From: Paragordius varius
Taxonomy: Eukaryota > Animalia > Nematomorpha
Assembly: GCA_964247055.1 (NCBI GenBank)
Contig: OZ176052.1
Location: forward strand, 3,658,001-3,722,000
Direction: 5' to 3'
Length of the DNA: 64,000 nucleotides
This document shows positions 5,006 to 45,252 of this stretch, piece by piece. Each line of letters opens with the position of its first letter. Within the stretch, counting starts at the first letter, position 1. The notes beneath the pieces are model-generated. The model had not been told where the DNA came from. It saw only the letters and a list, made by a program, of their open reading frames with translations, and did not search any database. Position numbers and translations under genes: made by a program.

Positions 5006-8000
5006 GGCCCCTGCGCAAGGATGACACGCAAAATCGTGAAGCGTTCCTAATTTTTTTAGCTTACTGACTGACCGACTTATTTTGACTTTTAATTTTTTAG
5101 CATTATTTTATCAAGGCAAATTTGATTGCTTTATTTATTTTGAGTAAAATGATGCTGTGTGAATATTGCCGCAGTTTGATCACTAATTTTTTCTTTTCAA
5201 AGTATTCGACCCTGTTTTTTATATATAAAGATCGAAGCGCTAAATTGTTAAATTTTAGTTCTCAGGCTTGGGAATTTCAAGTTTTCAACGTATTATTGTT
5301 ATATCAATGGTAAAAGCATTATAAAAACCTAACTAGTGATAAATAAATTAATGTTAGTCAATAGGTTTGCAAGTCCAAAGAGTTAGATATAGTGAAGCAT
5401 GGATGGTGAGCTAAAATAATTGGTGAAGAAAAGATGATAAATAAGTAATGGAGGTCTTCTAAAGGCATTGAAGAAAAAAATTATTATAAAGCAAATTAAA
5501 AGGAAACAATAAGAATTTGTTCAATGTTAACACAGTAATTAGGGGACTGATGCGGTTTATATAGCATAGCATAATGTCAATGTCAGGGCATGTATGTGTT
5601 GATTGAAAAATGACACAATTTTTGACCAATATATGAAATACGCTGAAGTATTATATTAGTTTAAAGAAGGATGCAACAACAGGAATAAGTATTTGACGAA
5701 AAATAACTAACAAAAACGTTACCGGACCAAACAATAAACATAAAATAATGAGTTGACTGATGTATTAAATAGCACTAATCGGCCATATCTGTATTTTAAA
5801 TGGCTAAAACAATATTTAATTTATATGTGTGTTAACACGTATGAGATTTTTCATTTTCTTATTTTAACAACTGTATTTTTCTCCACAGTTATCAAAAATG
5901 TAACTAATAAAACAAAAATTTCATGACAACTGCATCTATAATACAATACTACCATATTAGCTATTTACAATACAAGATAAGGACTAACTATATATTGTAT
6001 TTCAATTAATTAATATCAAAACTTAAGCGAATAGAGACATTGTAACAAACACAGTACCTTTAGAAAGGAAATACAAAATTAGGTATTTGGAAAATCTCTC
6101 AATATGAACAGGTAAATAAAATTTTGGGAATGCAAAAGGGTTAAATGATTGTTTGGAGAAGCTATGTATAGTGCATAGAAAATAGAGAAAAGTCTTGTTT
6201 CGGTTAGAGGGAATATGTGCGTCCATTGTATTGTCGTTAATTTGGATGGATGATTTATATGGTATAACTTTTATATGATGCCCTTGACCCTATTACCTGA
6301 CAATTTGCTATTAATAAAACTGGTTGAAAATATATGCTATTGTGTGTATAAAAACAGGCGGAAAACATGACTTATGGTTTTTGGCCAGGCACGTGTCATG
6401 GAACAATAGTCGCTATAATTGTCATTTTTTAGATGCGGCATGTGGTACGCGTAATAGATTATATAAATTTTAAGTAAAGTGAATTTAATTGAATGGGAAG
6501 TTAGGGGTGTGCTACTATGATTCAACCAACATGAATATTTTACAAACATAGTCGGTCAGAAAATTAATGTGTTCGAATAACATAAATAAAAATGCTTAGA
6601 ATGATGAAAAACAAAAGTTGGGAAAAAAATATAATAAAAAGTAAGTAGTGTTTAAACACAATGAGATTGTTTGGGGACATATACAGAGAATACAACAATC
6701 TAAATGGATTGCTAACATATTTAAAGTCAACTATGAAGTGACCACGAATCGTTGTTGATAACATTAAAAATATGTCTTGAAAACTCTGAATTAAACAGAT
6801 CTAGCGTTTAGTTCGGCTAATGTTCGGTGGAAATTAAAAAACGACGGACTTAAGTTTAAATGATTCCCAGAGAAAATTTTAGATTTCAAGAATGATCACT
6901 AACATGCCATGAATTAATTATCATTTTTATATATAAGAGTTATTTGTTATATTGATAGTTGTTCAAAATATTTTATATATGTATAAGCGGGAAACAGTCG
7001 ATTTCAAGCATTGACACCTATAAACTTGACGTTGTTCACAACCCCCGAGCGCTATTTATATAACCTGTTACATTTATCCATGATGTTATATAATTAAAGC
7101 GTAAAAAAATATATTTTTAAATGATAAAAAATTATTATCTGTTTTGCCGTAAACATTTTATTTTCACAAAAACTGGAATATTGTTTTTAAATAAAAACTA
7201 AAAACGTTACAATGGTATAATCATTATAGAGATAAATTTTCAACAACTTTTGATTTAAAAAACTGTAAATATAGTACCATTAAATAATATAAACGGTTAA
7301 AGGACTGTTTATCGGACCTATAATTTTAAAATTCGAACATTTTTATTAACCTTAAACCTTGATTATTTGAAAACAGTAGTGTTTAAATTTATAAAAACAA
7401 TAAAAAAACAAAAGACTTATATCCGTACCTTTTACTAAAAATAATGTTTTAAGTTATAAAGAATTGAGATATAAACCAATGACACACCCTCATTTCTATA
7501 TTTTACAAATAGTAATCTCAAACAAGGCTTTCTTTATGTGATTCAGGAATATTGTTTTTATCTGTTAATGTTTTTATAAGTTTATTAACTAAAATTACTA
7601 CCTTCCACCACTTTGTGTTACAAGTATTTGTGGTCGAACCGAAGTTGATGAAACATTAACCGTATTATTTTCGTTATTGCTGTCAATATTGGGATTGTTT
7701 TCTTGAGTGACCCTAATATTGATCCGATTATTATTATTGTTATTGCTATTATTGGCATTTCGGCGGACAGGTGCTGGGGTTTCATCAAATCCTTCGCTTT
7801 CTGTTATAAGGGCCCGTTCCAAAATAACTTTTCCCTCTTTATATCTATTGCAAAAAAAGTTTATTTGTTTAGAAAAAAAATGCAATATTGGTTAATTCCA
7901 TTATGGAATGCTTGAAATATTGATGACGTGAATATAATGCATTAATAACTTAATATTATGCTCCCATATTATATATGATTTATCCAAAAGTTTTTTAAGT

Positions 8001-14509: not shown

Positions 14510-17500
14510 TCATTTAACATTTTTATTGTAATTTAGACTATTTAAATAATAACTGGTCCCAATCAATAAATGCAATTTTTCCCAAAATAAATCTTCACAC
14601 CAATGTAAACACGGGTGTCTGATAAAAATATCAGCCAATTCCGAATATGTAGAAACACAAGTTATGTTTTTGAGTGTGCTACTATTATAATTAAAATTTC
14701 CAAAATTATTTTTATAATCATTATCTCTACTGACAATATTATTATTGTATAAGGAATATGTTTGTCGTTTTCTATTTGCCAAATTTAAAGGAGAATTTGA
14801 AATAGATGATGATTTAATTGGGGACCATATGATTATAATAACGCGATTAGCAGAATTAAAGAGGGATTTCGGCACGCATTTATCTTGTGCCCATGTGATT
14901 GCAAATAAATCTAATATCTGGATATTAGATTTATACAAATAAAATCAAAAATGTTAAATTGTGAATAATAATTTTATATATGGTAAAAAAATAAAAATAA
15001 TTACCTCTTTAATATCCTGACGAGGAATATCAATTTGGTTGGGAAATTCAGGGCAGTTTTTTCCAGCTAATTGGTTTAGTTCAACCCAAGAATCTGCAGA
15101 GATTACAAATAAAATTTTTCGACTGCCTCTAACATCTTCCATAATAATTTCACTCAAAAACATATCTCGGCTATAAGAATTGCATATATGAAGTGGATTT
15201 GATCTGATGCCTATGTATTGTAAAATGTAAAAAAATTGGGATTGGATTCATATTAATAACTAATGATTAATTATATAGCTTGTAAAACTAATAATCTTTT
15301 AAACTTTAAAATGGTCTAATGTAATATGCCACAATATATTAATTAGAATAAATTAAAACAAATCTTGGTACGAAACTATGAGTATGATTTCTCTTGATTA
15401 GACAACTCTATATAGATTTATATAGATCAAACTGCTAAAGGAAACATGCTTGTTAAGTTTTCGTCAAAAAGATATTTAATAACTTATTTTTATTTGATTC
15501 TTTACCGTCTGCTTTTTTAACCAAAGTCAACACTATTTTAAATTTTAACCATTTATATTTACAAACCACGAATTTGGTCGCCCGTGAGAAAACTTATAAA
15601 TATAGACCATCATCATCTTTCGAATTCATGGTGTATAAGTTGAAGCTTTTTTACTTTTACATGCCCTTGAAAACTATGCGATATAGATGTTCAGAATATC
15701 TTAAACTGGGCTGCTCTTTCAGCAAAGGTACCCAGCTTACTCTAAGGGAACGCGCAGTGGAAAAATCATATAATTCATTTTATATTCAGGTAATTATAAT
15801 ACTATTTTACAAAAAATTACAGTCTGGGTAATCAGGCTGTTCGAATAATAAATTTTTAATCATGGGTATATTTTATAAAATCATGAACCGACGCATTTAA
15901 TCAATACCTTTTAAATGTTTATCAGTGTATTTATGCTCAAGCAATCCGCTGGTATTATGGTCAGCAGCTGTTTTGGTTAAGATTGGACACAAAGTTTTGT
16001 GAATGAATGATTGTTGATCTGGACTTCCATCATAACTTACAAACACGTCATAAGTGAACAACGAATACGCCTCTATTATAAATTAAAATCACATGTAAAA
16101 TCGAAAAAGATTTAATTCCTTTTTTATAAAACCCTTTTTACCACTTTGTAAAATAAAATTTTGCTAAGTTAATACCATTCTGGAAAACAGATTATTTCGT
16201 TTAAAATTATATAAAAATATATAAACATCAAAAAAACATATTCCCACAAAAGGTTTTTTGTATTTTTATACTGACCAATAATAGTTCACAAAAAAAGTAG
16301 TGTTTTGATAACAATCATTAAAATTAGATTTTCCAAAAAAAACAATCGATATCGACTTATAACCATTTTGCAAAATAATAGAAATAAACCAGGAAGGGAA
16401 CATATTTTTTTAGAATTAACTTTTTGAAATCTTGGGACCAAAACCATCTTTTTATCCCATAACCGATAACGGAAATATTAAGCACCTTCACATGTGGAAT
16501 CCAAACAGCTGACAAGGTGCTGATTATCGGATGTTTTGAAAAAAGTTTCATTAATTCTATCATCGGCCATTGCACCCTCGATCGAATCATACGTGTTAGA
16601 GTTTGTTGAAGCAGCTGATGAGGAGCCATCTGGTGAATAAACAACATCTGGTAGAGGGCGAGAATGGACATTTATTTGGCCTAATAGAGGATATCTGCCT
16701 TTGAGTAGTTTTTTCATTTCATTTTTATGGGGGGTGGTATTATTAATTTTCTTGCCATTGTTTTTATTTGAATTGGTTTTTTTACGTCGTTTGGAAATCC
16801 AAAAAGCTAAAATGGCAAAAAGGACAAAAACAGCCGCAAAAGCCATACTTGTACCTATTATCACAGGTTTAAATAACCACTGATGCCCATTATTTTGGTT
16901 AAAATTCATAACACTATTATTTGTTGATAAGCTCATATTTATTATATCGAATTCGGTTTCATTAGCAAAAGGTAATGGCACAGTTGTTTTGTCAAGATTT
17001 ATAGTGCCATCAACTGTTTTATTTAGCTCATTTTTAGGAATGTTATTGGCTATTGACGTCAAATTATTTGACTGGAAATATGAAGTTGTTTCATTATTTC
17101 GGATAAATTTTATGTTAGAATCTTTAGAATCAGGTTTAAGTATTGTAGGATCATTGTGAAACAAGTCAATTGAATACCGATCTATATATTCGGCAGAAAT
17201 AGAAGTTATATCATAATTAGTGTTAGTATTGTGACTGTATTTAGTTTGACACATTTTATCAATTGTTTCCGATCCTGCTTTTAATATTTCCCTAATATTT
17301 TTTGAGTTTTGAGCGGGTAAGGGAGAAAATATTTCGTTTTTTAAGTCTATTAAGTTGTATTTTGATATTTTCGATTCTGAATTCAAAGTTATTAGAGTTT
17401 GGGGGAATATTGTTGAATGAAATGCTTGAAGAAGTAAAAAATCCGAAGTTGGTGCTTTTAGTAATAATGATGATTCGTGTTTAGGCACCCTGTAAATGCA

Positions 17501-20500
17501 TGTTAAATCCGAAAACAAATCATTGTTTTTGATATTTAATTTAGAAGTAGATTTTTCGTTTAGTCGAAATAAATATTGCCAAAAACATATATCTGTACAA
17601 TTAAATCGGTTTCCAGCCAAATAAAATTTAAGGGGCTCATCGGTATCAGATGGCATTTTATCTATCATATTTTTTAATATTCTAGCATCTAAATGAGTCA
17701 TTCCATTATAACTGACATCAAAATGTGTGATAGACTGTAGCACATTCGATCTTGTGAAAACAGATGATCGTAATTCAGTTATTTGGTTGAGACTTAAATT
17801 TAACGAATTAATTTGTTCAGTTTTGATAAACATGGAATCCGGAAGTTGAGTCAGCTGATTACAGCTCAAATCTAGGGTTTGAAGTGATATAAGACGTGAT
17901 AGCGCTTTAGGCTCTATAGTAGATATTCCACTACCATTTAAGTACAGATGTTTTAAATAAGACAATGGGAAGAAAGCATAATTGCGTAACCTTATAAGGG
18001 GCCTTTCGTTCCTAATAAAAACATGATTATCATAGTTGGTTGTATTATCGTTTTCATGGATTACAACAGGGTTACTTTTGTTAGATACGTTATCAGAAAT
18101 AGTTGTAGATTTGTTTTTATAATTGTATAAATCGCTACTGTGTTTTTGACTAATGCCATCTATATATAATGCATTTATATCAACACCGTCCCACCAAAGC
18201 TCATTTGTAAATCGAGGCAAATTTTCTGGAACTTTATAAAATTCTGGTGGAATACCTTCCATTGACCAAATAACATTATCCATTTTTTGACTATTTTCTA
18301 AAGTAGATGTCAGATGTTGTGAAAGTGTTGATTTTGACAAGTGTGATGTAAATGTCGTTTCGGATGACTTTAATGTGTTATCATTATTTTGGCTTTCAGC
18401 CGTTGTTATTTTATCTATTTTAATTCCAATATCAGTCGCCTCTTCGACAATATTATGATTTTCGGAATTTTTACTTTTGTTAACTACAGTCTTTTCAGGC
18501 CTCACAACGTGGTTAAAAAATTGTTTTGGCGTAGTTTCTTTTTTCGCGGGAGTACTGTTGGATATTTCTTCGGGATATTGTCCAGAATGTTCTTTTTGTT
18601 TGCTTTCATGACTTTTTTCACTTATATTTTGCCATTCATTCCCCACCAATGAATCATTCGTATTCAAAGGAGGTGGTATGTAACGAGGTCCACACTTTAG
18701 CACAGTATGTGCCCAAAATGCGTCTCGAAAACATATACAACCAGGCGGACAAACATATTTGCAATCACAATAAAAGAAGGTGCAACATTGGCACAATGGG
18801 GCACAATACTCTTCGTAAGGGCATAGAAAGTGAGCACCCGATAAAGGGATTAGCTGTTCACGCTTTACCACACGAAGGTAAGTCTGCCAATCAGCTGTTT
18901 TTCTTTGTTTAGCTCTATCATCCCATATGAGCTCGTCAGATTGCGTGGCGTTTCGTCTGCTCGTAATCATCGTCTGCATTTTAGCACTTTTATCTAAGAA
19001 ACATAAACAATGAATTAGGCATATTTTTTGGCTGTTATAATTTATATTTAATATCAGAGACTATAACAAAACCAAAAATCTATCAAAGTGAGGAGTTTTA
19101 CTCTGGCCGTTATTATAATTATATTTTAATGCAAAAACTTAAACCATTTTTTAGCCATCTTTTAAATATAGTCCGTTATTTTAATCCCACAGTATGCGTT
19201 TTAAATAAAATTAAAAGAAAAAAATTGTTTTTTATTAATACAGTGTAATGGTTAATCTGAGCATAGTGACTATTCGTATTGATGAATATTAATTTAATAT
19301 AATAAATATAAAAGAAAATTATTTAGCTGGAAATCCTAAATGGACAAAAGATGGAGCTTCATGAATTAAATTATCGGTAAAAATAAATATTTAATCATAT
19401 ATATTGTTTGAGTAACGACGAATGTTATAATAAATCGTGGGCATGTCGTGAATAATTAAGAAAAAACTTTTTTTATAAGAAATCCTAATATATTTTAGGG
19501 TATATAACGGGGAATTCCGTAATATACCATTTCATACAATTTAATATTAACACATGTGTTAATGGTTTACTAATGTTTTAAGTAAGAGATATCTTAATAT
19601 TTTCTCTATGCTTATAAATTATCATAGATAAATAGATGGTTAAAAATTGTGCTTCTCCGATAAAATGTTTTTTAAATTTTAGAAACGTTCGTTATTTTTT
19701 TAAATGATAAAAACCGAGAAAATGAGAACCGGTACCGGTTCTAAATCACAGCCTTACGCGTTTCAAATTGTATAATGTATAGTAACTAGGGTTGTGCTGA
19801 CCAAATCATGACCCGGTCAATTGACCGATTCATGACTAGGTCAGTGACTATTTATTTTTTGACCATGGTCATTTAAAAAAACAGCTGTTTTTTTGAAAAA
19901 TTGCTGGTAATTTTTTTTTGAATAGAGATGGTATATTTTATTGTTTGTATTTAAAAAATATAAATTAAATATTTAAAAATGCTTAATTAACAATATATTA
20001 AATGTTAAACATGCAACCTTATAACATTAACATTTAAGCATATCCAGTTATTTCGAAAAACAAAACAATCATGCACTTTGCAAACTATGCAATTATTCCA
20101 TATATGTAAACCAATAAAATAAAAATCATCCTATAATTGGATATTTCAATGATGAAAGAAAGCGTAAAACAAACTCGGTAAAATTTGGTTGAATTACACT
20201 GGACAACAAATTTTTCTGCCATTCGAATTTTTTGAATTTTCTGATATTTAGTATCATTTTAACAGAAAATCTGAAATAAAAATTATAACTCGTTGGAAGA
20301 ATTTTGTATAATTTGATTTTTTTGATTATGCGCCCTCTTTATCAAAATTTTACTAAAAAATATTTTTCTTTCAAAATATACAAGTAATGCCCATTTGTAA
20401 TATATCATTCGAAAGAGTAATAAAAACTCTATAAAATGCATACTAATATGTATTACATCGACACTTAATATTGGACACAAAGAGCGAACGCGCGAAGCGA

Positions 20501-28221: not shown

Positions 28222-29764
28222 TTATCCAATTTTAGCCTTGGAAAAATCCATTTCAGGATGTTGAGCCATAAATTTTTTGAGCATGTCCATCTTTTTGGCC
28301 TCCTCTGAAGTGGGTAAACCTAGTTCTTTCTGTTTTTGATCATACATCATTTTTTCAACCATACCCCGGGTCTCACCATCTAAATCGGATAGTTTGGAAT
28401 TTTCAGGCACAACTTTTTTCGTATCAATTTCAATGGGATCATTGGTTAGGAGTTTGGACCACCATTCCATTTTATTAACTTTCTCCAGGGTTAACTGTAT
28501 AAGAATAAAGTCAAAATGAAAAATATGAGAAGCGTATAAATAAAATTTGATGTTTTGCTGTTTGTCCACATAATTGATAGGTAAATGTACGAAAAAAAAT
28601 TCTTTAATGTATCACTTTACAATTTCCACAAAATAAAAATCAAAAATATTTGATATGTATATAAAAATAGATAATAAATATCATGGAGCTGTTTATTTCC
28701 TTATACAAGTCGATTTTATGCATTTTCCCTCCTTTAACAATTAATTTATCTTAGAAACATTGTATAGATCCGAAAATGACAGGCATAGTCTTGTATAATA
28801 TTTTCAAGTTAAAAATTAAAATATTTTTGATCAAAAAAATATTAAATTATACATTAATGGTATTTCCATCCGTTAGGAGCCAGGTAGATTCTTCAATCTT
28901 TACCAAATGTTGCAGTTTGCCATTTATGATTGGAGTCGTTATACCTTTTATACTGACTGTCAAGTTATCACGCGTTATGTCAACCTTAATGTCCTTACTC
29001 TTTAACTTAATAGATTTATCGGGGAGGAAATCACCCAGGGGTATTTTAATCTCAAGCTCAGCCAAAGTTTGACACCATTTATGGGTTGGTAAATCAGCCC
29101 CGTTCCCACTATTTGGTTTGACTTTTCCTGAAAAAATAGAAAATAAGGATATATGAAATGATAATTATATAAATTTAATATTGATTGCAGAAGGGTAAAT
29201 TTGTAATTATATTAATAGATTATATATATCGAGACCTAATGGGATTTAAAAAATTTCTATCCTTAATTATTAACAGAAAATTTTTTATTTATATATATAC
29301 CTTCATCAATTTTATCTATATCATCGTCTGAATCGTTCTTTTTTTCTATTGCGTCCCCATTTGCAACAATGTTGCTTTTAACGGCATTACTCTCCTCAAA
29401 TTTTTGTTTTTTGACTTGGATTTCTTTTTCAAGTTTTTGCGCTTCCTCGTCAGTAAGTTCCTAAAAATAAGAAAATTGATACTTTAATTTTTGGTTCATT
29501 TTGTGGGATTATTTTTTTATGAGATTCTTTTTTCAATTGTTTTGATGCCGCAATAGATTTGTATTTTTCAAAGTACTCAAGGACTAACTGTTTTGGTTTT
29601 TCTGCAGATTCCTTATTATTATCGACAAAACACATGGAATAAAAATCCGTTTTCCGTTGCAGAAAGCTGAAAAATATATCTAAAAGTCCTTGAACACCAT
29701 TTTCTTGCTCTTGAGCAACATGTAAAAGAAGAGTATCAAATTTTTCTAAGTCCGAATTTTCCAT
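28222..29764 (-). CDS. NUDC: Nuclear migration protein NudC (Hsp90 co-chaperone, CS domain), 329 aa
   Basis: Exons 29764-29483, 29460-29301, 29127-28853 and 28494-28222 (990 nt). Motifs [65 protein letters not shown] and [14 protein letters not shown] are diagnostic of NudC. Confidence 0.95.
29461..29482 (-). other. 22-nt GT-AG intron (NudC intron 1)
   Basis: GTATCAATTTTCTTATTTTTAG. Removing it fuses EPKIK to ELTDEEA, restoring the conserved NudC motif. Retaining it causes a frameshift and a stop at 29452-29450. Confidence 0.8.
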
Positions 29765-29953
29765 GTTAAATTAATTTTTCAAAAGTAAAACCTTACAATA
29801 AAAGCTTTTAACAGTTGTGGTAATTTAGAAAGCACATGGCTTCACAATTTGATTTGAACAAACCCGCAAAAAGCGTTTATAAACAGATTAAAAAGGTTTT
29901 TTTGTAAAATATTTTGAAGAATAACAAATTAAAAAATAAAAAAGAAATTTAAG
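29765..29953. promoter_or_regulatory. Putative bidirectional promoter shared by NudC and RIOX1
   Basis: Only 189 bp separate the two divergent ATGs (29764 on -, 29954 on +). Confidence 0.7.
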
Positions 29954-32900
29954 ATGACTGAAGTTTCCAAAAATAATCATCATAATGGCCAAATCTTATC
30001 GATTGAATCAAATGATAAGAGTAACAAGCTAAATAAAGTATTTTATTATCAATAGCTAGCCCTATCTATATTCAAATATTAACGATAGCATATTATGGAG
30101 TAATAATGCCTTTGAATGGTTGATTAATCCAATAACCAAAAATGAATTTTCCAAGTTTTTATTATTATAAAACGTAATGTAGAAAGTATTGGGAAAAACA
30201 GGCCCTATATATTCAACGGGATCACAATGGCTATTATTCTCATTTATTTTCATTTAACAAATTTGACCAGATCATTACTGAGGTTTGTTATTTAATTTAT
30301 GTTATGTTATAGCATTATCTTTATTACAACGAAAATATCGACGTAACTTCCTACAAAGATGGTGTTAAAGAATTGCATAATCCTAATGGCAAAGTTTTTT
30401 CCCCGGTTTTATGGGAATATTTCAATGTAAGATTTTTTTTCTATTTAAATCATATTTACAAAATATAATCCTGTAATAAATTGTCCTTATTAATTGTTCC
30501 GGGTGTACCAAGATTTATCTTTAACGAAACATAACTACAGGCGAGTTTTTTGATTACTGGTTTTTTTATGATATATTCCCTTAACCTTATTATATTATTT
30601 ATAAATTTTATATCAAATGTTGTTAAGTGTTTAATGTTACGGTGGTAGTAAAAAATTAGCGGAATGGATTTTACCTGATATGGTTATTTCATCCCACTCA
30701 TGCTTGCGTATGAGTTTAATTTTCTAATTAGACAAAATTTTAATAATTTCTATCAGTCGTGTCATGCGAGTATTTGAACCCTATTTGTGCCCATATTACC
30801 CAGTAAAAATTGAATTTTTAAATATTTTTTTTAAAAAGCCAACCATATTTTTTAAGATTTAATTTTTCAATATAACATAGCGTTAAGGAATAGATAAATT
30901 AATAAAACACTATAAATATTTTACATATTTAATCATAAATTTTTTGCACAAAAACTTTAGGTTTAACAAAGTATACCACTTTTTATAAAAAATAATCTTT
31001 CTTTCAATTTTTTGTTTTGTATAAAACATTGTCAGATGCATATTTGTCTCAGAGTTTTTTTGGAAATTGACCCACTCCAAATATTTTTACTTTCTTTTTC
31101 TGAGCACAAAATAAACTTTTAAACGTATATATAAATACAACAAACGTATTTAGGAGGGATGTTCTGTGCGTTTTTTGAATCCTGCCAAATTTAGTCGTGC
31201 TGTATGGTCCCTTAATGCGGGATTACAGGAATATTTTTCATCATTCGTTGGTTGTAATATGTATCTCACGCCGGCTTATAGCCAAGGCTTTGCCCCTCAC
31301 TACGATGATATTGATGCCTTTGTCCTTCAAATTGAAGGCTCGAAACATTGGAAAGTATATGCCCCTTTCAATAATGGTAATTCTTTTTAACACTTTATTA
31401 CCTTTTTATTTGTTCGTTCGATTACATTTTGATATATCTTTGTACCCCAAAGAGCTTTATTTATAAACTACTGTTTTAAAGGTTATTTTGGTTAAAATGA
31501 AATTAACAAATATTGTTATCCTGTATTTGATAAAAAGGCTTATATTTTTTGCAGTTTTCTCACTGAGTAAGTTCGAAATTGGGCTATTATAAAAACTAGA
31601 TTGAGTGGTACAGCTGAATTCATAATTATTAATCAGAATTTTTGCTAAAATGTATCGAAAAGCTTTTTCAAGTTAATTATTTACCTATATTAACTGTATA
31701 TTCATATATTTGCCTATTGTATTCAATTTAAATTAAAAAAAATTGCAGCCAAAGGGTTTGAAGAGAGTTTTTTTAAATTTTGTTCAAAAAAAAATTATTA
31801 ATCATGCACCAAACGTCTAAAGAATGAATATATTTCCAATATAAAAGCTTTTGAAAATTTTCGAACTTTAAATACCGTGGGCACAAAATAGCTTTAAAAG
31901 ATAATGAAGTGTTAAAGTGATTATGGTTTTTAACTTTTACGTGCTTAATTGACCTGAGTTTTGGTTCATAATAAATGGTTATCCGTTGATTTTTAATATT
32001 TATGCATAAAATTTAAAAATTTAAGGAAATCGATTTTAAGGTTCGTTAATATTGGATACCAGCATATTTTATATAAGATAAAGTCATTTAGTTTTAATAA
32101 ATCTATTTTTACTGTTTTTCTTTCACTTCAATGAATCAAATTTAAATTATATATTTTATTGATGAATTTTGTAAAAGCATCGCCAAAACCGCACGTCCTT
32201 TTTTTCCCCATGCCCAATCACAGTAAAAATTAAATTATACGGGAAAATCATAAAAATATAAAGACAAATTCTTTAAAAAGACAACCAACCATGCTATTTT
32301 AAACCTTAATTCTATAAAAATTATTAATTTATAATAAATGGAATTATATACCTATTTAATTGTCATACCAATATATATTCTATTTCATACTTTACAGTTT
32401 TACACAATGTTTTAGTTATATTTAAAAAATCAAGATGCAAATTTATAATTTTACTTGTCCGTATAGTTCCAATTTTACTATATTCCTTTTTTTCTGACTT
32501 TTATTGTGTGTTAAATTCTGCGGAAATTATTCTAACAAGATTTTGTAAATTATATGTATATACGGTGTTATTTTATTAATTGAATAAAAAATATCATGTT
32601 TCCATATACAATAAATATATTAATAATATTTTTTAATGACTATAGCAAAATAGTTTTTTTATAAGCGCTATTTTATTTTCAAATATTACCTAATATAATC
32701 TCGATTATTATTATTATACATGGATGGTGAATAGATTTAACCTTGCCCCTAAAATCAAGCGTGGATTTTAACGAAACATCCACATTTACCCCTGAATATT
32801 GGCGAAATCCAATCCTTGAGGTGTGTTTGAAACCTGGTGATTTGCTTTATATGCCACGCGGGTTCGTTCATCAAGCTTCTACCATACCACCCAATGAAAA

Positions 32901-35900
32901 TGGTTAAAGAAAATTTATTTTTAAATTAATTTTAATTAAGATTGCTTTTTATATAATGATTATAGAATACTTTAGCGAATCTATTAATATAGTTATAACT
33001 TGAAAATATTCTCCTTAAGCTGTTTATTTTCAAAAATGTAGCTGAATTGAAGGTTTTTATTTTTGTTTTTCAATTGTTTCTACTTTCCGCATCTTCACTC
33101 TTTAGTTTGGACTCAGTAAGGTCGTCGTATATGGAACTGAAATAGCTTTTGAATAGCTTCCCAGGTTTATCTTGTGGTCTACTATAGATGTGACCAGCCC
33201 ATCTTAGTCTTTTGGCATTTAGAAAGGGGTTTAGAGCAGTGATTTTAAGGATTTTTAGAAATCGAATTGATTACAAAAGGAGATATTTTAAGATTATGAA
33301 CAAATAGAATTGTTAGTATTTTGGATTTAAAGTTTTGGAATTTACAAAGATAAATTTTGTCATAGACCAGTATATCGTGGCATAGGTCAGCGCAGCACGG
33401 ATAATTATAGAATATAACTGCGATTTCATTTCAAGTATGATAAATCTATTATTAATTATGTGTTAGGTTATGGTATATTATTATGCCTTCAGGTGACGTT
33501 TTTTGAGGCTATCATTAATACCGCCTTTAGCGGGCATTTTATCGCCTAATTATATTAAGTGAGTTACCGTTTCGTAATTGAAATTATTGGGGATTGCAAG
33601 ATTAGGTTCTGGTAGTGGTAACTTATCAATGCAGTTTGAGCAAGTGGACTTATCTACCTTAAGTTAATATAGGTTTGCGCATTTTTTATGTTGCCGGAAA
33701 TTACATTTAGTGTACAATATAGAGTTTGCCTTCACAGCTAGCTTGCAAATGCTACATGGGTACTTAATGGGGTTTTTTATATTATCATGCATTAATTTTG
33801 TTTTGCTTGGATTAATTTGAGATAACTTTCCAATCAATTTTTCCATTGATCAGATTGATTATAGGAGGTCGTCTTCCGGTGAATTCACTCATAACAAGAT
33901 TATCTGCAAAGAGCAGTTCCAAGTTGGACCCCTACGTATATCCATTGTAATTTCATCATTTATTATAATAAACAGTGGGGAACCTTGGTGTAGCCCTCAA
34001 GGTACGCTTATTGTTTCCGAAAGATTAAACAAGGTCTTAATTCGGGCTTTGGAGTCGGTGTTTAACAACGTTATTATGCTTTTTATCATCCATTCTTAGA
34101 TTAGCTTTTAATTTGATTTTTGCAATCTGGCAAAAGCACAATCGATGCGATTTTTATACTTTGTCAGCTGCCAGCGGTTCTTCTCTGAAATTTATCCCTG
34201 TATTACCCCTTCTTTGACGTAGTAAAGGCGTTTGACTTTATCCCAAGATCGATGATAACATGAACCATAAGAAGAAAAAGGATTTTCAAAAGCATAATAC
34301 TGTTATATTCCGACTTTAAAGCCCAAATTAAGATATTCTATATGGTCTTTCTGAAACAATCAGTATACAATCAGGGCAACATCAAGATTCTTTTAAAAAT
34401 TTGGACTGATTATTTAAAAGTGAAGTGGTTATCACAGTTACGGTCTGGAAAATATATTTTAAATTTTGTGTTAAATAATTTTTTAGCCATCCTTATGAAT
34501 AAAAATAATTTTGCTGATTATACTTATTGTGTTTAGATTCGGCATCGCATTCACTTCATTTAACCTTATCAGTGTGCCAATCATCAACATGGGGTCAAAC
34601 CATTGAAAAAGGATTTTTACATGCACTTCGAACACTTATGCATACGGATGTCGAATTTAGAAAATCTTTACCACCCGGTCATCTGAACTACATGGGACAA
34701 ATGTTTGAGGGCAAAGATGCAGTATTAGGTATGAATTATTTAGGTTGAAGTTTTGAAAAGTTTTTTATTGAACAAACTTTAAATAATAATTTAATGTTGT
34801 AGACAAATGTGGTTTTTGAGAATATATGTGTTTGTCGCTATATTTTTAATTGTACAAAGATTTTTTTCTTCCGGTGTGGACAAACAAAATATTACACATA
34901 TTAATATATTCAGGTTTATTTTCTGTTTAATATTGAATCTCGAATATTGGGCTAACTATAAAAAAATTATGTGTTTTATCTTTTTCAATCTTAATTTATT
35001 GGAATATACGCTTGTCAAATACGTTAATGGCGTAACCGTTTCGCTTTATAAACATTTTTATAATGAAGTTTATTTGGTGGTATTTACGAATTGGTGTTAC
35101 GTATTGGCCTTAAAAAATATTTTATTTCGTAACACGTTTTTATCCTATATGGATTTTTTAATTTCCTTAGCAATTATTTATAAATAAATGACTTTTTGCG
35201 TAAATTATATTTGTTTTATTGGTCAATGCCTGTGCGCTTTTATAGCATTTATAAATCTTCTAGGTGAATTGTTGGTTTAAGATAATTGCATTTACTCAAA
35301 ATGTTTATACTTAAAATCTTTCTTGACATATAGCTAATTAATGGTTATAAAGATAGAAAAAATTTTTTTATATTGATCTATTTACCATTTTAATTTTTAT
35401 ACATTATCATATAATTACATATTTTATTTTTATACACTATCATACAAATACATATTTCATGTAAATTAATTTTTGTAAATTCCTTAACATATACTCTTAT
35501 ACAAATAAAACAGGTGTTGACTATGAAAATAAACGGAAACAATTTAAAACAACCATCTCGACACTTGTGAATCGCGTTTTTGAAACAATGTCTCCAGACA
35601 CTGCGGTTGAATCTATGACTTTATCACGTTATATTCCAGAAAGTTTACCACCATACCTTGCGACAAAACAAGAAAAGCTATCCACAATCCATAGTTTTCA
35701 TCAGTCAACTGATGTTAGTTCAAAAGGTAATTTATTTGTTTTGCACACTAATTTTGTTTATATAACTTAAAATAATGACAAAATTCCTCCTATGAATGAT
35801 GATATAACTTAAATCTTTAAATATTAACTGCATATTTATATTGTGCTTTTAGCGATAGTAGTTGAATATAAAAATCATAAATGATCTCATGGTATGATAC

Positions 35901-37108
35901 CTATGATATTTTAAATCTAAGAACCACAGAAAAATTCATTTAAATTGTTTAGTTAGAATTTAAAAAAAATATATAAAAGTTTTACCATTTTTAGATTATT
36001 TTTTACCAAATGAAAAAGTTAATTTGGTATGTAATTTATATTGCAGTTTTAATGGGAGAATCTCTTTTCCCAAATTTGTCATTACGGACACGTATTAAAT
36101 TGGTTCGATATGGATCTCATCGTATAGTAACACCTGACACGTGCTCTTTTGAAAAAGGTTGTTTGTTTCATAAAAATATTTGGTTAATAAACTTAAGTTT
36201 TCGAAGGTAACTTGAAAAAAAAATTTATATTTGATTCTTTATAGGTCAAATCATATTTTTACTATGCTAGATATAAACGAAATTATGGTGAATCCGCCCA
36301 CATTACAAAATGATTTGATGGAAAATGAAAGCCCCTCCTACTATATGGTATACCATAATTTAGAGAATGGATTGAATTATAAGGAAAAACCCATACAAAG
36401 TTTTGCAATAACTCCTGAGGTATTTATATAGTTAATAAAAATTAAACATAACTTAAAAACTACTAAATACAAATATTTTTGTCCCATGTATAGCCATACA
36501 TAGTTTATCCCTAATTATTTTAAATTATCTGAGTAATTACAATTGTGAAATTGAGTATACCAATGTACATCTTTATTTCACAACCCAAAAATTATTAGAT
36601 CCAAAAATTCTAGCTTTCTTTTAAAAAATATTTGTTTTAGTCAGCACATTTTGTATTTATAATTTCTGATTTTTGGGCTAAAAACCTTTTTTTCCAATTG
36701 ATATACTTTATTAAATTAAAGCTTTAAACCCCCTTTTTGAATTATATTAGGTATGTTCAGTTATTAAATATTTAATGAAGACATATCCAAAATACATTCC
36801 CATCTCCAAATTACCTTTGAGTGAGGAACGTGAAAAGGTATTTTATGTGATTTTTAACATTTTTAATTTCTCAATAAATCGTAAATTATTCTCGAAAATA
36901 TAGCTTTAATATTGCATTACATTGGTTTAATTAAAATTATTTTAATGGTTATATAATATACATTCACACACTTTTTACTAAATAATACGTATTTTAATAG
37001 ATTGATGTCGCATTGTCATTGTTTGAAAAAGGGCTCATCAAACTTCATTGCAAGCCAAAACCAGGCAAAAAAGTTACGAAAAAGAATTCATTGATAATTA
37101 TTGAATAA
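29954..37108 (+). CDS. RIOX1: JmjC ribosomal oxygenase / histone demethylase NO66-like, ~547 aa
   Basis: Exons 29954-30037, 30060-30154, 30183-30282, 30313-30426, 31154-31376, 32735-32902, 34537-34728, 35514-35726, 36047-36157, 36271-36419, 36751-36837 and 37001-37108 (1644 nt, phases consistent). Motifs [69 protein letters not shown] and FEKGLI are present, and the HxD...H iron triad is intact. The first exon and start codon are less certain. Confidence 0.9.
30038..30059 (+). other. Probable 22-nt GT-AG intron (RIOX1 intron 1)
   Basis: GTATTTTATTATCAATAGCTAG. The acceptor is fixed because its TAG is an in-frame stop. The donor could alternatively be 30021 (39-nt intron, different ATG) or 29963 (97 nt). 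Confidence 0.5.
30155..30182 (+). other. 28-nt GT-AG intron (RIOX1 intron 2)
   Basis: GTTTTTATTATTATAAAACGTAATGTAG separates [14 protein letters not shown] from [12 protein letters not shown], which are contiguous in NO66 proteins. Retention gives an in-frame TAA and a frameshift. Confidence 0.85.
30283..30312 (+). other. 30-nt GT-AG intron (RIOX1 intron 3)
   Basis: GTTTGTTATTTAATTTATGTTATGTTATAG lies between FDQIITE and [14 protein letters not shown]. The terminal TAG is an in-frame stop if the segment is retained. Confidence 0.85.
33080..33945 (-). mobile_element. Degenerate RTE-X-like LINE, 3' part (RT YADD region, Cys/His finger, C-terminus)
   Basis: Reading through frameshifts gives IRRG.(P)[35 protein letters not shown]...C...[13 protein letters not shown] and KRLRWAGHI. 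It lies in RIOX1 intron 6. Confidence 0.8.
34020..34340 (+). mobile_element. Degenerate RTE-like LINE reverse-transcriptase fragment (upstream RT motifs), opposite orientation to the adjacent piece
   Basis: [15 protein letters not shown] (~34126-34170) and [13 protein letters not shown] (~34210-34248) match the GRSTTDAIF..RQL and F.DLEKAFD.VPR motifs of RTE-type RTs. Confidence 0.75.
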
Positions 37109-38958: not shown

Positions 38959-41900
38959 TAGTGTCTATTCATAAGTTTTTACGGGTTTTATATTAAAAAC
39001 ACTAGTAATTTTGAAAGGGATCAATATTTAATTCAAATATTGTGTGTCGCTTTCATACCATTCCTCTCATCATAAGGTAAAGCATAATTACCGTGCCAGA
39101 AAAACTGATTAACATTTGCGATATATCAATCGTCAAGCCATTTTTCAATGTTTTCAAAATTATTTCAGTGCTACTCTGCGAGGGGCCCTATTGATGCGAG
39201 GTTATATTAAATGGAGCTTGCAGGAGTCAGATGATGCGGAAAAAATTACCGTCGAAGCGATTTAAATGTGTCTCGTTGGTTTGCATGACGGGACGTCGTG
39301 TAGCATAGCAATATTTGTGGCTCATTCCAGTTGTTTTACAAATGCATGGTTTTAATTTGGAATAGCGACAGTGTTTTGCATAAATGCTCTTCTTCCCAAT
39401 TCGATGCTAAATTCGATGTTAAAGCAGGATTTCACAAGTTAGTTTGCAATTAACGATTTGATGTTTACTCCATTTATCATGTTTATTGGTCTTTCCTATT
39501 GCTCTTAGACATCTATTGATTGCTGATACATGTAATGGTGTAAATCTTTATCATCTTTGCAATTTGTAGCGTACAAGAGCGCCAACTTTCTTTCATCTTG
39601 TAAACTAAACGTTTACATTTTTAGAAACGATGTTTCACATGTTTCAATCAATGGAGCATGTTAACCATATGTTTCTACCAAACGAAACTTTCAGCGGTGT
39701 TAATTTCTCTGATGATGCAGGCCGCAAAATTCCTCTTCAGACACAAAATTCGACATAATTACTGAATGATAAAAACTAGACGCTAGTTTTTGGTATATTC
39801 AACTTGTGTGTGTTGTCGTTTATGTCAGATCATTGGGGTTTATAATAAATCGTTCGCGTATTTTTCTTTGACGTCTTTTAGTTAAACCAGTAATAGCTTA
39901 GGAATACAATACGTATATATAACAATGAATTAATCAAATCTGTCTCATTTAAGGCTAATTTGGTAAAATACACCTATATACTAAAATAGGTAACAATAGA
40001 AGTACCACAAACACATCTCAAAATCAAAACTTACCAGTTTATGAAACACACCATTATTTAATGAACAAATTACCCTATCAAGCGTCTTCAATCTTTGATA
40101 TAGCAACGCTCAAGAGTGCCGATATTATTAATAGCAATCTCAATCACAATCATCAGTATAGTAGTAATCTAACCAATAACTTGCAAAATACGTTGGATTC
40201 TTCCCTTTCTTCAGCATTTTCCACGGATTTCACTTCCCCAACAAATAGTAGCGTGAGTTTTGATGAAGTTTCCTACAATAACTTCAACAATAATAATATT
40301 AATAATTCATCGACATACATTAGTAACAATTTGTACCAAAGTGGATTTAGCATTTATGGTTTCCCTCACAATAAACAACGCAAAAGGACACATTATACTC
40401 AAGAACAACTAAACTGTTTGGAGGATTTGTTTCAAAAAAATCATTACCCAAATTCGGAGGAAAAGAAAAAATTATCATACAAAATCGATATTGAAGAGGC
40501 AAAAATACATGTATCATATTAAATAATTTTGATTTTTTGTTTAATTTAAATGTTTCTTGGGAAAATATTTCAATTTTTGGAAGTTATGAACAGATTAGCA
40601 AAAATACATAGTTTTATGGGGTACGCTTAAACCATATTTTATATATAGATTAATATGCTGTTTCGCATTCATTTATAAGTTTTTGTATTTTTAAGTGGTC
40701 AACCATCCTTTAAATAAATTAAGCACTTAGAGAATTTTTTTTGAAAAGACAACCATACTTTTTAAACTTTGAATTATCTTAATAACTATATTCCTTGATT
40801 GGGTGTGTTACCAATTTATATCTATATTCATTATTTTGCCAACCCAAAATAATGAGTTATAAACTTAAAAATCTTATTTGTCTGTTAGTTTATATATTTT
40901 GTCCGTATAATTTCAAAAATTACTGTACTTTAATTTTAGGTATGGTTTCAAAACCGAAGATCTCGCGAAAACAAAAGCAAGAAATTTGGCAATAAGAAAA
41001 TGAAGATGGCAACCAATTCGTTCGAAGGTTTTAATACATTGTTTAATTTGATTTATTTTATGGTATCGTTACGTCAGTACACTACTCACTATAATATGTT
41101 AACATTAAACTGAAACTTAATTAACCAGATTTTCAGTGTCGTGTTAATTAAAATATAGGTTTGACAAGACAAAGTTTTTCAAACAATTCCAAAGAATATA
41201 TTTTCCCTAGATGTTATCAGGTGATTAGTAATTTTTGGATGGCGATATTTAAGTAAACAAAAAAATATTTATTATTTTTACCATATATTAAAATGCTAAA
41301 TTCTATTAAATCATGTCCAAAAAATATTTGTGTTTCAATATCAACTTATCCGCAATAATGTTGGATTGTGACCTAATATTATTTATATAAAAATCACAGG
41401 TTTAAATAGGTAACAATCCAAATTTATTGAATTTACTATTTACATTACATATTTATTAAAAACATGAATTTTTAAGTACAAATTTGGAAAAGCAATCAAA
41501 AAGGCTTCATGGTGTTTTAACAGTTTGGGCACGACCTTTTCACTTTTTTGTCAGCGGTGGTAGTTTTTTATCCCAGTGCCCAATCTTGGAAATAAACTAC
41601 TGTTTTAAAGGTTATTATAGTTAAAATTTAATTATCTAAAAATGTTGTTTTGTATTAGATAAAAAGCTTATATTTTTACAGTTTTATGACTTCTAGAGTT
41701 TAAAATTGTTACCGCTTCAAATAAGACTAAACAGCTGTTATTAAATCGATAAATATCATGTTGCTGGTAAAGTGCAATTTGAAACCTTACTGTTTATCAT
41801 TTTCATTTTCTAACCATAATAAACATTTAATTGCCTATTCCATTTATCAAATCAAAAAAAAGATAAAAAATGGCGGCGAAAACGTTTGAGATAAGATTTT

Positions 41901-44900
41901 TTATTTATATTTTCAAAGAAATTTTTTTAGTATCGTGTGAAACGGCTAAATATCGCATATTTTTAATTCGACATAGTATCTTAAATACTTTTGCTTTATC
42001 GCATATTAAACTACACCAAAAGATGAAGTGTTAATCTAATTTTTAACATAGAGCATTTCCTAATCATGTCACTCAATATCTTTAATGTATTTTACAGTAA
42101 AAACTAAAATTATACTGACAAAACGAAAAATATAGAGACAATTTTTTTTTCAAAAGACAACCGTGCTTTTTCAAACCTTAATTTTTTTCCATATAAATTA
42201 TTTAATTACAATTGAAAATATATAACAGACAACAAATTTTAACTTTTTTAAACTGCCAATTTATTTCATTAAAGTACATATCTGAAAAGAAAATTGGTCT
42301 AGTATGAAAGAATTTTTTTATATTAGAGTTTATCGATATTTTTTGGCCTCGATTTAACATTAAACTCGAAAATTAAAAGTTTTTAGATATGAAGCCATGT
42401 ATTTTAAATCATTCGAAAGAGCGCAAAAAACTGAATTTTTAAATGGTAGTAAGTCATTTAAATCAAGCGGATGTAAAAGTTATTTGGATTTAAATGGTCG
42501 AAATTTTCAATCCTTAAATAAGTCAAGAATTTTCACAGACAAACCAATTTGAAAATCATATAAATTATTTTAATATAATTATTAGGGTTATATTAGTATT
42601 TAATTTAAAAAAAAATGTTTAAGCTTTTGGGTTGCTTTTTTTATAAAAAATAATTATTATCATAAATATTTTACCTAGTGGATACTAAAATGCATAGTTA
42701 TAACCGTAAATTTATTACATAATGGCTATAAAAGATCAAAAATACCTTAAACTTTGTTTATCTTTAAAATTTCGATATAATCAGCCTCGTAAAGAAAATA
42801 AATTAATATTGATGAGATGGTAATTTTTAAAAAACAAAAAACTTAAAATTGGCTGTTTTGAGTGACAAAGCAATAAAAAATGTTTTAATCAAAAAAACTT
42901 TCTTGTGTTATCTTTTTTGGACATTCATCACCATCTAAACAAAGTTTGAGCTATTTTCATCCATTAGTTTTAAAAATATAATAATTAAAAAAAATGCTCT
43001 CGCTTCGCGCGTTTGTCGCTCTTTGTGTCCAATATTAACTGTCGATGTAATACATATTAGTATTCATTTTATAAAGTTTTTATTACTCTTTCGATGGGCA
43101 TTACCCGTATATTTTCAAAAAACATTTTTTAGTAAAATTTTGATAAAGAGGGCCCATAATCAAAGAAATCAAATTATACAAAATTCTTCCATCGAGTTAT
43201 AATTTTTATTTCAGATTTACTGTTAAAATGATACTAAATATCAGAAAATGCAAAAAACTCGAGTGGCAGAAAAATTTGTTGTCCAGTGTAATTGATTATA
43301 TTACCAATTTACATCTCGATATACTTTTACTTTTAAAACCATTTATATTATAAAAATCAAGAATTATGAATTATGGTTGCTAGAAAACAATATTTGTCTT
43401 TTTTATATTTTTACGTTTTGTCCTTATAATATCAATTTTTACTGTATTTTTATTTATTTAAAAAATATTACCAGATTCGGAATCAAATTTATCACAAGAT
43501 ATTATGGATATGAATAATGAGAGTTATCAAAATGATCAATGTGAACAAAATAATACTACACATTTTAGAAGTAATAATTTGCTGGATTCAAGCTATAAAT
43601 CCTCCAATATTGGTTACACTTACAATAATAAAAATAATCAATATATTGAAATAGCAAACAATAACTGTAATAACATAAAAGCGCCAGAAACCTCTGACAA
43701 TATGTACTTTTTAAGCAAATACATATATGATAAAAAGACGAATCAAATCATAGAGCAAAAATTTGATTACAATAATGTCAAGAATTTGCTTATTCATAAT
43801 CAATCTCATATGAATGAGGTCCTACCAACTCCCCTACTTTCTAATTTTTTGAATAAATCTACTGGCAGTAATACAATGCAAAATGGTACATCAAATCACA
43901 TTTTACATGCCAAAAGTGGTATGCTAAATGTTCAATGGAACAACAATGTTATGTTTAAAAGCATTAATGATTCCAACAACCTTAATGGTAATGTTGCAAA
44001 CACAACTTACAATTTAAATGATTATATTAACATCAATAAAAATTTAATGGTGGCCAGTAAAGCAATGATTTTAACCAATTCAAACGGTTCTGCATATATC
44101 CCCAAAAATATTGTAAGTGATCAAAATTGTGCCATGGTAAAAGGCAATGATAATATATTAAACTTAAATCGGTCATCATCCATCCTCGATTTGGTTAATG
44201 CACAAAATTCTACGGTTCCAGCTTCAGCAACAACATTAGATAATTTGGTTTATAGCGTTTTGAACAAATGTAAACCAAGCATATATTTAGAGCATAATTA
44301 CAAAACAACATCGATTGAAAACGGAACATCAACTGCAATGACTGGCGACTCAAATAACAAAATTTATAATAATTTCAATATAAATGTTGATAAAGAGCCT
44401 GAAAATTATAATAAATATGATGTTAACACACCGAGTTATGGCCAGCAAGGAATTGACCCAAAACAAAAGTCCACGACGATGGATGAAATGATATCAAAAT
44501 CGTTACAACCAATCTCTGATTACGTTTGTAGCGGCGAACCTTATGAAAATTTTGGCTGCCAAGAGTATCCAGCAGTGTCTGATAATGCACATTGTTCAAA
44601 CAATTCGTCTTGGTCCTTTTTTCTCGATGACACGGTGGATAATGGAATGGATCTTTGCAATGAAGAATTCGCCGCACATAATAGTATCAGTACGCCAAAT
44701 TATTACGAGAATAAAACACCCTCACCCCTATTCGATTTCCCTACCGATATATTTCAATCAAGCCCACTACCTTTGAGTGTTACTACGGGCAAAAACAGTT
44801 TTATTCATACTACACATAATTATTTCCCGAATGAATCAATCAATGATGACTTATATACAGATTCATGTCCACAAGTTGATGATAATTATGAATTAAAAAA

Positions 44901-45252
44901 TTTTCTGGTCCCATCGCCGAAATATGAGATACCCGGTCTGAAATCGCTAAATGAACAACCCAGCTTCTTTGAAACATTGAGCAAAATACAATTTGAGGAA
45001 AGCTTTAAGCAACCGACAAACCAATTACCCCCTTTGTCATTTTATTTTAAGCATAGCAACAATCATAGTTTTAAGGACAATGCTGATACAACAAGCAAAG
45101 AAACGTTTGATTTTTTTCATGATGAAACACCCATAAATATGGCAGAAACTTTACCATCCAATTTATCTTACAATATTAATAATAGCAATCTTAACGGCCT
45201 TTACGATGGGTTTGAAATGGCAGACATATTCCCAAATTATGAAAATATGTGA
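38440..45252 (+). CDS. Divergent PRD-class (Q50) homeodomain transcription factor, ~829 aa, Asn-rich
   Basis: Exons 38440-38590, 40038-40510, 40940-41027 and 43475-45252 (2490 nt, phases 1,0,1). The homeodomain KQRKRTHYTQEQLNCLEDLFQKNHYPNSEEKKKLSYKIDIEEAKIH|VWFQNRRSRENKSK has its intron between residues 46 and 47, the position typical of PRD-class genes. Exon 1 is the least certain. Confidence 0.85.
38923..38958. repeat. (AT)n microsatellite
   Basis: 36 bp of AT repeat with one C interruption. Shorter (AT)n runs occur near 1270 and 9400. Confidence 0.95.
39040..39890 (-). mobile_element. Decayed DNA transposon, probably MULE-type transposase relic
   Basis: Locally higher GC and full of stops. 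The minus strand gives N(H)AFV..WNEPQILLCY across a frameshift, and FFWHGNYALPYDERNGMKATHNI. These resemble MULE NAF...LLCxxH and TNNxxExxxN motifs. The segment 39735-39890 is repeated at ~13515-13670. Confidence 0.45.
41521..42030. mobile_element. TTAA-flanked (piggyBac-type) non-autonomous element
   Basis: TTAA at 41517-41520 and 42031-42034. The internal AAAATGGCGGCGAAAA.GTTTGAGAT.AG and the GAAGTGTTAA end are shared with copies at ~24600-25100, ~31480-31915 and, inverted, ~60650-60900. TIR identity is weak. Confidence 0.6.
42226..43288. mobile_element. Family B Tc1/mariner-type element, inverted relative to 20197-21304
   Basis: Ends AAATTTGTTGTCCAGTG-TA at 43288. It is collinear with the reverse complement of 20197-21304 over about 1 kb. 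The left TIR is damaged (CAGACAACAAATTTT). It lies in homeobox intron 3. Confidence 0.8.

Follow-up and report, generated by a model that had tools for sequence, protein, structure and literature searches.

Probable micro-introns of 22, 28 and 30 nucleotides in the NO66/RIOX1 gene of the hairworm Paragordius varius and a candidate genome-wide class of very short introns

Introduction

The hairworm Paragordius varius (Nematomorpha) carries, on the + strand of a 64,000-nucleotide (nt) stretch of its genome (assembly GCA_964247055.1, contig OZ176052.1, positions 3,658,001 to 3,722,000), a NO66/RIOX1 gene whose 5' part is interrupted by three segments of 22, 28 and 30 nt. This whole stretch, with a G+C content of about 27%, is called the window below, and positions are counted from its first letter. 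Here, we present comparative evidence that the three segments are very probably U2-type GT-AG introns of an intact nematomorph NO66/RIOX1 gene, and that they would belong to a discrete genome-wide class of micro-introns of 22-36 nt that prefers the 5' part of genes and stands beside ordinary introns.

Introns shorter than 30 nt were long thought to be absent in animals, and gene finders routinely discard them. The animal record of introns below 30 bp is confined to myxobolid Myxozoa and Dicyema, according to Hadjez et al. (Mol Biol Evol, September 2026, PMC13644364); that study described reduced splice motifs and a clustering of short introns, and predicted that further lineages would be found (PMC13644364). 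A literature search returned no report of such introns for Nematomorpha, and the preprint on the genome of the horsehair worm Gordionus makes no mention of introns. A preliminary description of the window had proposed three consecutive micro-introns in NO66, perhaps recognized by length and AU content rather than by consensus strength, whose inefficient removal might couple NO66 output to nonsense-mediated decay (NMD). This interpretation is partly supported by the analysis that follows.

Results

Comparative evidence for three micro-introns

Homology searches were run exon by exon, by reference. A protein search yielded 150 NO66 relatives, 80 of them full length, and those 80 were run against the window by tblastn. 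When the 28-nt segment (30155-30182) is removed, zero residue discrepancy is left in all 13 homologues aligned on both sides. The 30-nt segment (30283-30312) appears as a 10-residue gap opening exactly at 30283 in 47 of the 64 alignments that span it. The best E values across the two segments are 2e-16 and 4e-17. Both are pinned by NO66 sequence on either side, as had been proposed. The in-frame stops assigned to them are also present: retention of the 28-nt segment leads to a TAA after six codons, and retention of the 30-nt segment to an in-frame TAG at its end. The coordinates, lengths and frames proposed earlier for all three segments, and the intervening exons of 95 and 100 nt, agree with our own reading. 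Searched singly against the PDB, exons 3-5 were too short to give a significant match, and only the positions of their weak NO66 matches were usable.

An additional NO66 gene on a Logan contig (L001) carries a 70-nt GTAAGA..TTTTTCAG intron at the same codon and in the same phase as the 28-nt segment, and its exon runs uninterrupted across the site of the 30-nt segment. Aligned to the window by tblastn, this exon shows a single gap of exactly 10 residues at the 30-nt site (E 5e-13). At the first ordinary intron of the gene, 727 nt in length (30427-31153), 48 of 60 homologues gave zero residue discrepancy across the junction.

The NO66 relative of highest identity is that of Gordionus sp. m RMFG-2023, a horsehair worm (the Montseny hairworm), with 75% identity over the JmjC exon. 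Its RIOX1 protein (RefSeq XP_065320687.1) was mapped on its own locus (L064; OX940786.2:11218409-11253945; 24.8% G+C), where the first five introns measure 44, 51, 42, 43 and 48 nt and are followed by introns of 9.3 kb (9303 nt), 2.2 kb, 0.4 kb, 11.6 kb and 3.7 kb. Gordionus exons 4, 5 and 6 correspond one-to-one to 30060-30154, 30183-30282 and 30313-30426 (E 0.02, 8e-7 and 5e-17), and the 22-, 28- and 30-nt segments fall at the codons and in the phases of the 42-, 43- and 48-nt introns. The 727-nt intron likewise shares its codon with the 9303-nt intron. The two orthologous genes thus have intron codons and phases and exons of 100 and 114 nt in common, and both begin with short introns that precede a very long one. 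They differ in that the five 5' introns of Gordionus (42-51 nt) exceed the three aligned here by about 20 nt, and in that Gordionus has one extra N-terminal exon.

A probable upstream exon and the boundaries of the 22-nt intron

A segment at 29836-29895 is probably the true first coding exon of NO66/RIOX1. Its final 10 residues resemble the final 10 of Gordionus RIOX1 exon 1 (their local alignment scores 35, where 187-nt segments of the window give a null of 19.1 +/- 3.2; empirical p 0.0007), and, as with Gordionus exon 1, a phase-0 GT marks its end. The only AGs that join it in frame to the open frame from 29933 lie at 29953 and 29944; the former choice, a 58-nt intron, makes the following exon exactly as long as Gordionus exon 3 (84 nt). 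A 24-nt intron directly after the upstream exon (29896-29919) was considered and rejected, since the downstream frame would then meet a TAA at 29950. With this exon, missed in the preliminary description, the three micro-introns become introns 2-4 rather than 1-3.

The 22-nt intron had been marked as doubtful. Its acceptor is now pinned at 30059/30060 by Gordionus exon 4, which starts with PYL at 30060 in the same phase, and an acceptor at 30055 instead would leave an in-frame TAG. We infer a donor at 30038; the exon before it is then 84 nt long and agrees with Gordionus exon 3 in length and phases, the sequences of the two being weakly similar. Alternatively, the 28- and 30-nt introns may be the only genuine ones, with the upstream junction using another donor or another start. 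The upstream exon sequence is not conserved, and two further GT positions keep the frame, giving introns of 39 nt (ATG 29985, donor 30021) or 97 nt (donor 29963). We regard both as less likely than the 22-nt intron, and this alternative as a whole as unlikely: the acceptor is fixed by Gordionus, the 84-nt exon reproduces Gordionus exon 3 in length and phases, the 97-nt model leaves an internal exon of 9 or 18 nt once the exon at 29836-29895 is accepted, and 22-nt introns are proven by conserved motifs elsewhere in the genome, in the kinesin P-loop.

A candidate class of micro-introns across the genome

The assembly (110.6 Mb, 44 contigs) was searched in six frames with Pfam models and the loci were then inspected, with a constrained junction solver providing unique or best solutions for 71 inter-exon junctions. 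Eleven further micro-introns of 22-36 nt were pinned by homology outside NO66, in kinesin, myosin and CCT genes (Table 1). In the kinesin P-loop region (IFAYGQTG.GK), one 22-nt intron splits IFA|YGQTG, another lies just before LIFAYG, and a 23-nt intron lies within GYNG|TIIAYGQTG. One kinesin gene (L053; C3:3075341-3075980) starts, like NO66, with consecutive micro-introns, of 22, 23 and possibly 24 nt; the possible 24-nt intron lacks an in-frame stop and could equally be coding. A pinned 33-nt kinesin micro-intron is also free of in-frame stops, and among the firm micro-introns six have a length divisible by three, one of them without a stop. Because introns of this kind also occur in kinesin, myosin, CCT and NudC genes, NO66 is not special.

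Among about 85 sampled introns, lengths were either 22-36 nt or at least 54 nt, and none fell at 37-53 nt. Micro-introns made up about 12 of these (roughly 14%), and the rest spanned 54-2870 nt. Within conserved domains, micro-introns lay at a median relative position of 0.24 and ordinary introns at 0.61 (Mann-Whitney p 0.013). Recognition by length and AU content, as suggested in the preliminary description, is plausible and would be compatible with this separation of a discrete 22-36-nt class from introns of at least 54 nt.

De novo scans of two designs for short GT..AG segments joining open frames revealed no excess over decoy dinucleotides, because open frames of 28-30 codons are too common in this sequence. 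A ciliate genetic code was considered for the stops inside Pfam matches and rejected; these stops lie at match edges or within GT..AG segments.

Splice signals and spliceosomal RNAs

All three NO66 segments, and all 16 catalogued micro-introns, begin with GT and end with AG. The NO66 donors had been called weak, and they do depart from GTRAGT; the departure is, however, not specific to these introns. At position +3, the 66 ordinary introns (54-2870 nt) have A in 43, T in 18, G in 3 and C in 2, and the 13 micro-introns A in 5 and T in 8 (T against ordinary introns, Fisher p 0.12). Donors of the form GT[A/T][A/T]N[T] and acceptors of the form [T/A]AG are common to both intron classes. Weak donors are thus a property of the genome and not of micro-introns. 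T occupies position +6 in 11 of 13 micro-introns.

The interior of the micro-introns is 57% T, 31% A and 13% G+C, which makes them rich in U and not short of pyrimidines. The statement that G is essentially confined to the GT and AG dinucleotides does not survive, as each NO66 intron contains two or three internal Gs. In the 12 nt before the AG, micro-introns have a mean of about 7.6 pyrimidines, the same share as the 3' ends of ordinary introns. A polypyrimidine tract is accordingly lacking in the 28-nt NO66 intron, an outlier with 4 of 12, and the claim fails for the 22- and 30-nt introns, which at 7 of 12 resemble their class. Motifs resembling TAAT or TCAAT, candidates for the branch site, occur 6-18 nt from the AG; they are expected by chance at 87% A+T, and the sample is too small for a logo.

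The genome encodes a U2 small nuclear RNA (snRNA) scoring 178 bits, with the branch-pairing sequence GTAGTA, and U1 snRNAs scoring 119-124 bits. Two of the three U1 copies read carry the canonical 5' end ACTTACCTG, and the third reads ACTTACTTG. Both snRNAs occur in clusters (U2 at C3:257000-528000, U1 at C6:565000-634000), in which many copies score far below the best ones and would be degenerate copies or pseudogenes.

Organization of the NO66/RIOX1 gene

The exons and introns of the gene are listed in Table 1. The exon at 31154-31376 matches human NO66 structures (E 6e-25) and the Pfam family JmjC_2 (5e-18). This family (PF08007) was matched on two exons, and the HxD...H triad, formed by APHYDD and HSLHLT, aligns to human NO66. 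For the C-terminal winged-helix domain (WHD_RIOX1), the open frames at 35465-35767 and 36216-36428 gave no Pfam match at E<=1, and the former gave no PDB match; one NO66 homologue aligned to 35495-35692. With its catalytic motifs and at least five downstream exons collinear with NO66, the gene looks intact.

Table 1. Exons and introns of NO66/RIOX1 in the window, and micro-introns in other genes of the assembly
Feature	Position	Strand	Description
Exon 1 (probable first coding exon)	29836-29895	+	20 codons, MASQFDLNKPAKSVYKQIKK; ATG start; ends at GT, phase 0
Intron 1 (presumed)	29896-29953	+	58 nt (acceptor 29953), or 49 nt (acceptor 29944); frame kept either way
Exon 2 (exon 1 of the preliminary description)	29954-30037	+	84 nt; N-terminal region rich in K and N; open throughout; both ends in phase 0
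Micro-intron	30038-30059	+	22 nt; GTATTT..CTAG; phase 0
Exon 3	30060-30154	+	95 nt; tblastn best E 2e-16 jointly with exon 4; aligns to Gordionus exon 4
Micro-intron	30155-30182	+	28 nt; GTTTTT..TGTAG; phase 2
Exon 4	30183-30282	+	100 nt; human NO66 4e4h residues 44-72, collinear with later exons
Micro-intron	30283-30312	+	30 nt; GTTTGT..TATAG; phase 0
Exon 5	30313-30426	+	114 nt; aligns to Gordionus exon 6, E 5e-17
Ordinary intron	30427-31153	+	727 nt; GTAAGA..TTTAG
Exon 6	31154-31376	+	JmjC core; HxD iron-binding motif APHYDD
Ordinary intron	31377-32734	+	1358 nt; GTAATT..AATAG; placed by frame, phase and NO66 collinearity
Exon 7	32735-32902	+	Human NO66 196-230 and MINA53, E 3e-7 to 1e-6; boundaries read from sequence
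Ordinary intron	32903-34536	+	1634 nt; GTTAAA..TTTAG; placed by frame, phase and NO66 collinearity (230 to 232 of 4e4h)
Exon 8	34537-34728	+	Second iron-binding His (HSLHLTLS); human NO66 232-288, E 4e-9; 3' end approximate
Further C-terminal exons	about 35465-35767 and 36216-36428	+	Approximate positions
CCT micro-intron			36 nt; pinned by conserved motif
Myosin micro-introns			27, 27, 32, 33 nt; pinned by conserved motifs
Kinesin micro-introns			22, 22, 22, 23, 25, 33 nt, possibly 24; pinned by conserved motifs

Neighbouring genes and other features of the genome

Given the extra exon, the NO66 start (29836, +) and the start of a divergent NudC-like gene (29766, -) are only 69 nt apart, so that either the 5' untranslated regions must overlap or a shared promoter must be extremely compact. 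After its first exon, the NudC-like gene has a 22-nt GTATCA..TTTTTAG segment (29461-29482, -) whose removal is needed for an open frame; its flanks are of low complexity, and it is therefore not pinned by homology.

Elsewhere in the window, three long single-exon open reading frames (ORFs) with Asn/Ser runs, at 16478-18979 (-), 40061-40522 (+) and 43504-45252 (+), comprise an 833-amino-acid leucine-rich-repeat membrane protein, a paired-class homeobox exon and a 582-amino-acid low-complexity ORF; the homeobox exon ends at the usual 46/47 homeodomain intron site. The assembly also contains an intronless ORF of 534 amino acids resembling KDM8/JMJD5 (L005; C6:4137472-4139076). Its best match by far is an unnamed 905-amino-acid protein of the oribatid mite Medioppia subpectinata (E 5e-116, 32% identity), well ahead of all other animals.

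The mitochondrial contig (C44, loci L039 and L040; 15,693 bp) has ecdysozoan gene blocks. Its coding genes contain dozens of inverted repeats with arms of 52-208 nt and 95-100% complementarity; these palindromes are spread across the contig, and most of the longest have little or no spacer. Long perfect palindromes in mitochondrial coding genes have been described only for Nematomorpha (PMC6649704), and with the high identity of the Gordionus NO66 they make a hairworm the most likely host. An arthropod host had been suggested by the mitochondrial gene blocks, by the label 'Arthropoda' for a COX1 piece in the ESM Atlas and by the mite match of the KDM8-like ORF, and was dropped in view of the palindromes and the Gordionus NO66; insect odorant receptors were looked for and not found, which is uninformative. 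A tandem array of hairpin units of about 72 nt (6745-7451) lies upstream of cox1, and a COX1-like nuclear fragment is found at C1:10612280-10612597.

Discussion

The comparison establishes the termini, frames and positional homology of the three NO66 segments and the recurrence of such segments in other genes. Their probable mode of removal is intron definition, carried out by a conventional spliceosome whose U1 and U2 snRNAs are canonical. The signals would be minimal: the GU and AG dinucleotides, U at +6 and a U/A-rich, G/C-poor body, with an A-containing branch region probably a few nt upstream of the AG. The micro-introns would represent shrunken ancestral short introns, with Gordionus having 42, 43 and 48 nt at the three positions, and genes that contain them would often also have ordinary introns, from about 54 nt to several kb in length.

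Several points weigh against this reading. Excision of the micro-introns is deduced from comparison, and no RNA, cDNA or protein of the same species was found by an exon word search, a large protein search or a word search with the Gordionus protein. Around the donor of the 22-nt intron the N-terminal sequence is not conserved, and the 39- and 97-nt alternatives also keep the frame. The statistics of the class are small, with 13 firm micro-introns and 66 ordinary introns from three protein families, the intron ends were selected by a GT..AG requirement, and the 5' bias was measured inside Pfam domains and not from transcription starts.

The micro-introns could be real and, in NO66, regulatory, their inefficient removal producing premature stops through which NMD tunes output. 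Retention of either pinned intron would introduce a premature stop, the 28-nt intron is the poorest in pyrimidines of the 16 catalogued (4 of 12), and a passage in PMC13644364 reports that very short introns of Microsporidia are spliced inefficiently. Chance stops are nevertheless expected at 87% A+T, one 33-nt kinesin micro-intron is stop-free, and like introns occur in kinesin, myosin, CCT and NudC genes. The proposed coupling to NMD is generic, as a premature stop would follow from the retention of any intron here; nothing points to regulation specific to NO66, and we consider it improbable that the introns serve this role.

Alternatively, the segments might not be removed at all and reflect a decaying pseudogene or assembly or insertion artefacts. 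In favour of this stand the negative transcript searches given above and the fact that annotators usually take animal introns below 30 nt as errors (PMC13644364). The gene has nevertheless kept every catalytic motif and at least five downstream exons intact and in NO66 order, the GT..AG borders of each segment coincide exactly with the position of an orthologous intron, and the pattern recurs in essential genes, which together make this explanation very hard to maintain. Removal or bypass without the spliceosome, by an IRE1- or tRNA-type endonuclease or by ribosomal bypassing, has the unusual length of the segments and nothing else in its favour, and is scarcely credible given that 16 of 16 have GT..AG ends, that their positions are those of ordinary spliceosomal introns in relatives, and that no conserved hairpin or other motif was seen in them.

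Spliceosomal micro-introns thus being the preferred reading, a broader proposal can be made, for and against which we see about equal chances: hairworms may possess a two-regime intron system, in which a 5'-biased class of 22-36 nt, shrunk from a class of 42-51 nt kept in Gordionus, and ordinary introns are served by the same conventional snRNAs. If so, the gap in length would mean that the micro class is recognized in a way of its own or by its own set of factors. With both classes handled by a single metazoan spliceosome, comparisons within one gene would have a natural internal control, and the 42-51-nt versions at the same sites in Gordionus would offer a close comparison for intron shrinkage. 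Annotation is affected as well: a pipeline whose shortest permitted intron exceeds about 20 nt will split or cut short many genes of this genome, and the missed first exon of NO66 shows how easily gene models err.

Tiny introns are familiar from protists, with about 25 nt in Paramecium and 15-16 nt in Stentor, and also from the Bigelowiella nucleomorph; in Paramecium, stop-less introns of a length divisible by three are depleted. The micro-introns of P. varius share with those of ciliates and the Bigelowiella nucleomorph their size range, AT-richness, minimal signals and intron-definition logic, but in these protists practically every intron is tiny. The Schistosoma and tapeworm genome papers reportedly describe bimodal intron lengths, with small introns concentrated near the 5' end of a gene and large introns near its 3' end. 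Parasitic flatworms are thus similar in their 5'-short, 3'-long architecture; they belong to another phylum, and their small class peaks at about 30-40 nt. Human ultra-short introns (43-65 nt), in whose splicing SPF45/RBM17 replaces U2AF (PMC4463651, PMC8363638), also have truncated pyrimidine tracts and may require a different 3' splice-site factor, which provides a lead on mechanism, although they are twice as long.

The closest counterparts are the introns of myxobolid Myxozoa and Dicyema japonicum, parasites in which GT-AG introns of about 20-30 nt have motifs of little beyond GT(a/t) and AG, lack a long polypyrimidine tract, coexist with a conventional U2 snRNA and neighbour other short introns (PMC13644364). 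P. varius, likewise a parasite, is similar in each of these respects, and introns below 30 nt are represented by those of 22 and 28 nt in NO66 and of 22, 22, 22, 23, 25, 27 and 27 nt elsewhere. In myxobolids and Dicyema, however, tiny introns are the norm, with medians of 22-27 nt, whereas here they form a minority of about 14%, are set apart by the gap at 37-53 nt from an ordinary bulk with medians of hundreds of nt, and lie toward the 5' ends of genes. The host lineage is also unrelated, as Nematomorpha belong to Ecdysozoa. If the present reading is correct, hairworms would constitute a third, independent animal lineage with introns below 30 nt, an ecdysozoan one, and the first animal case in which tiny and kilobase introns share a gene.

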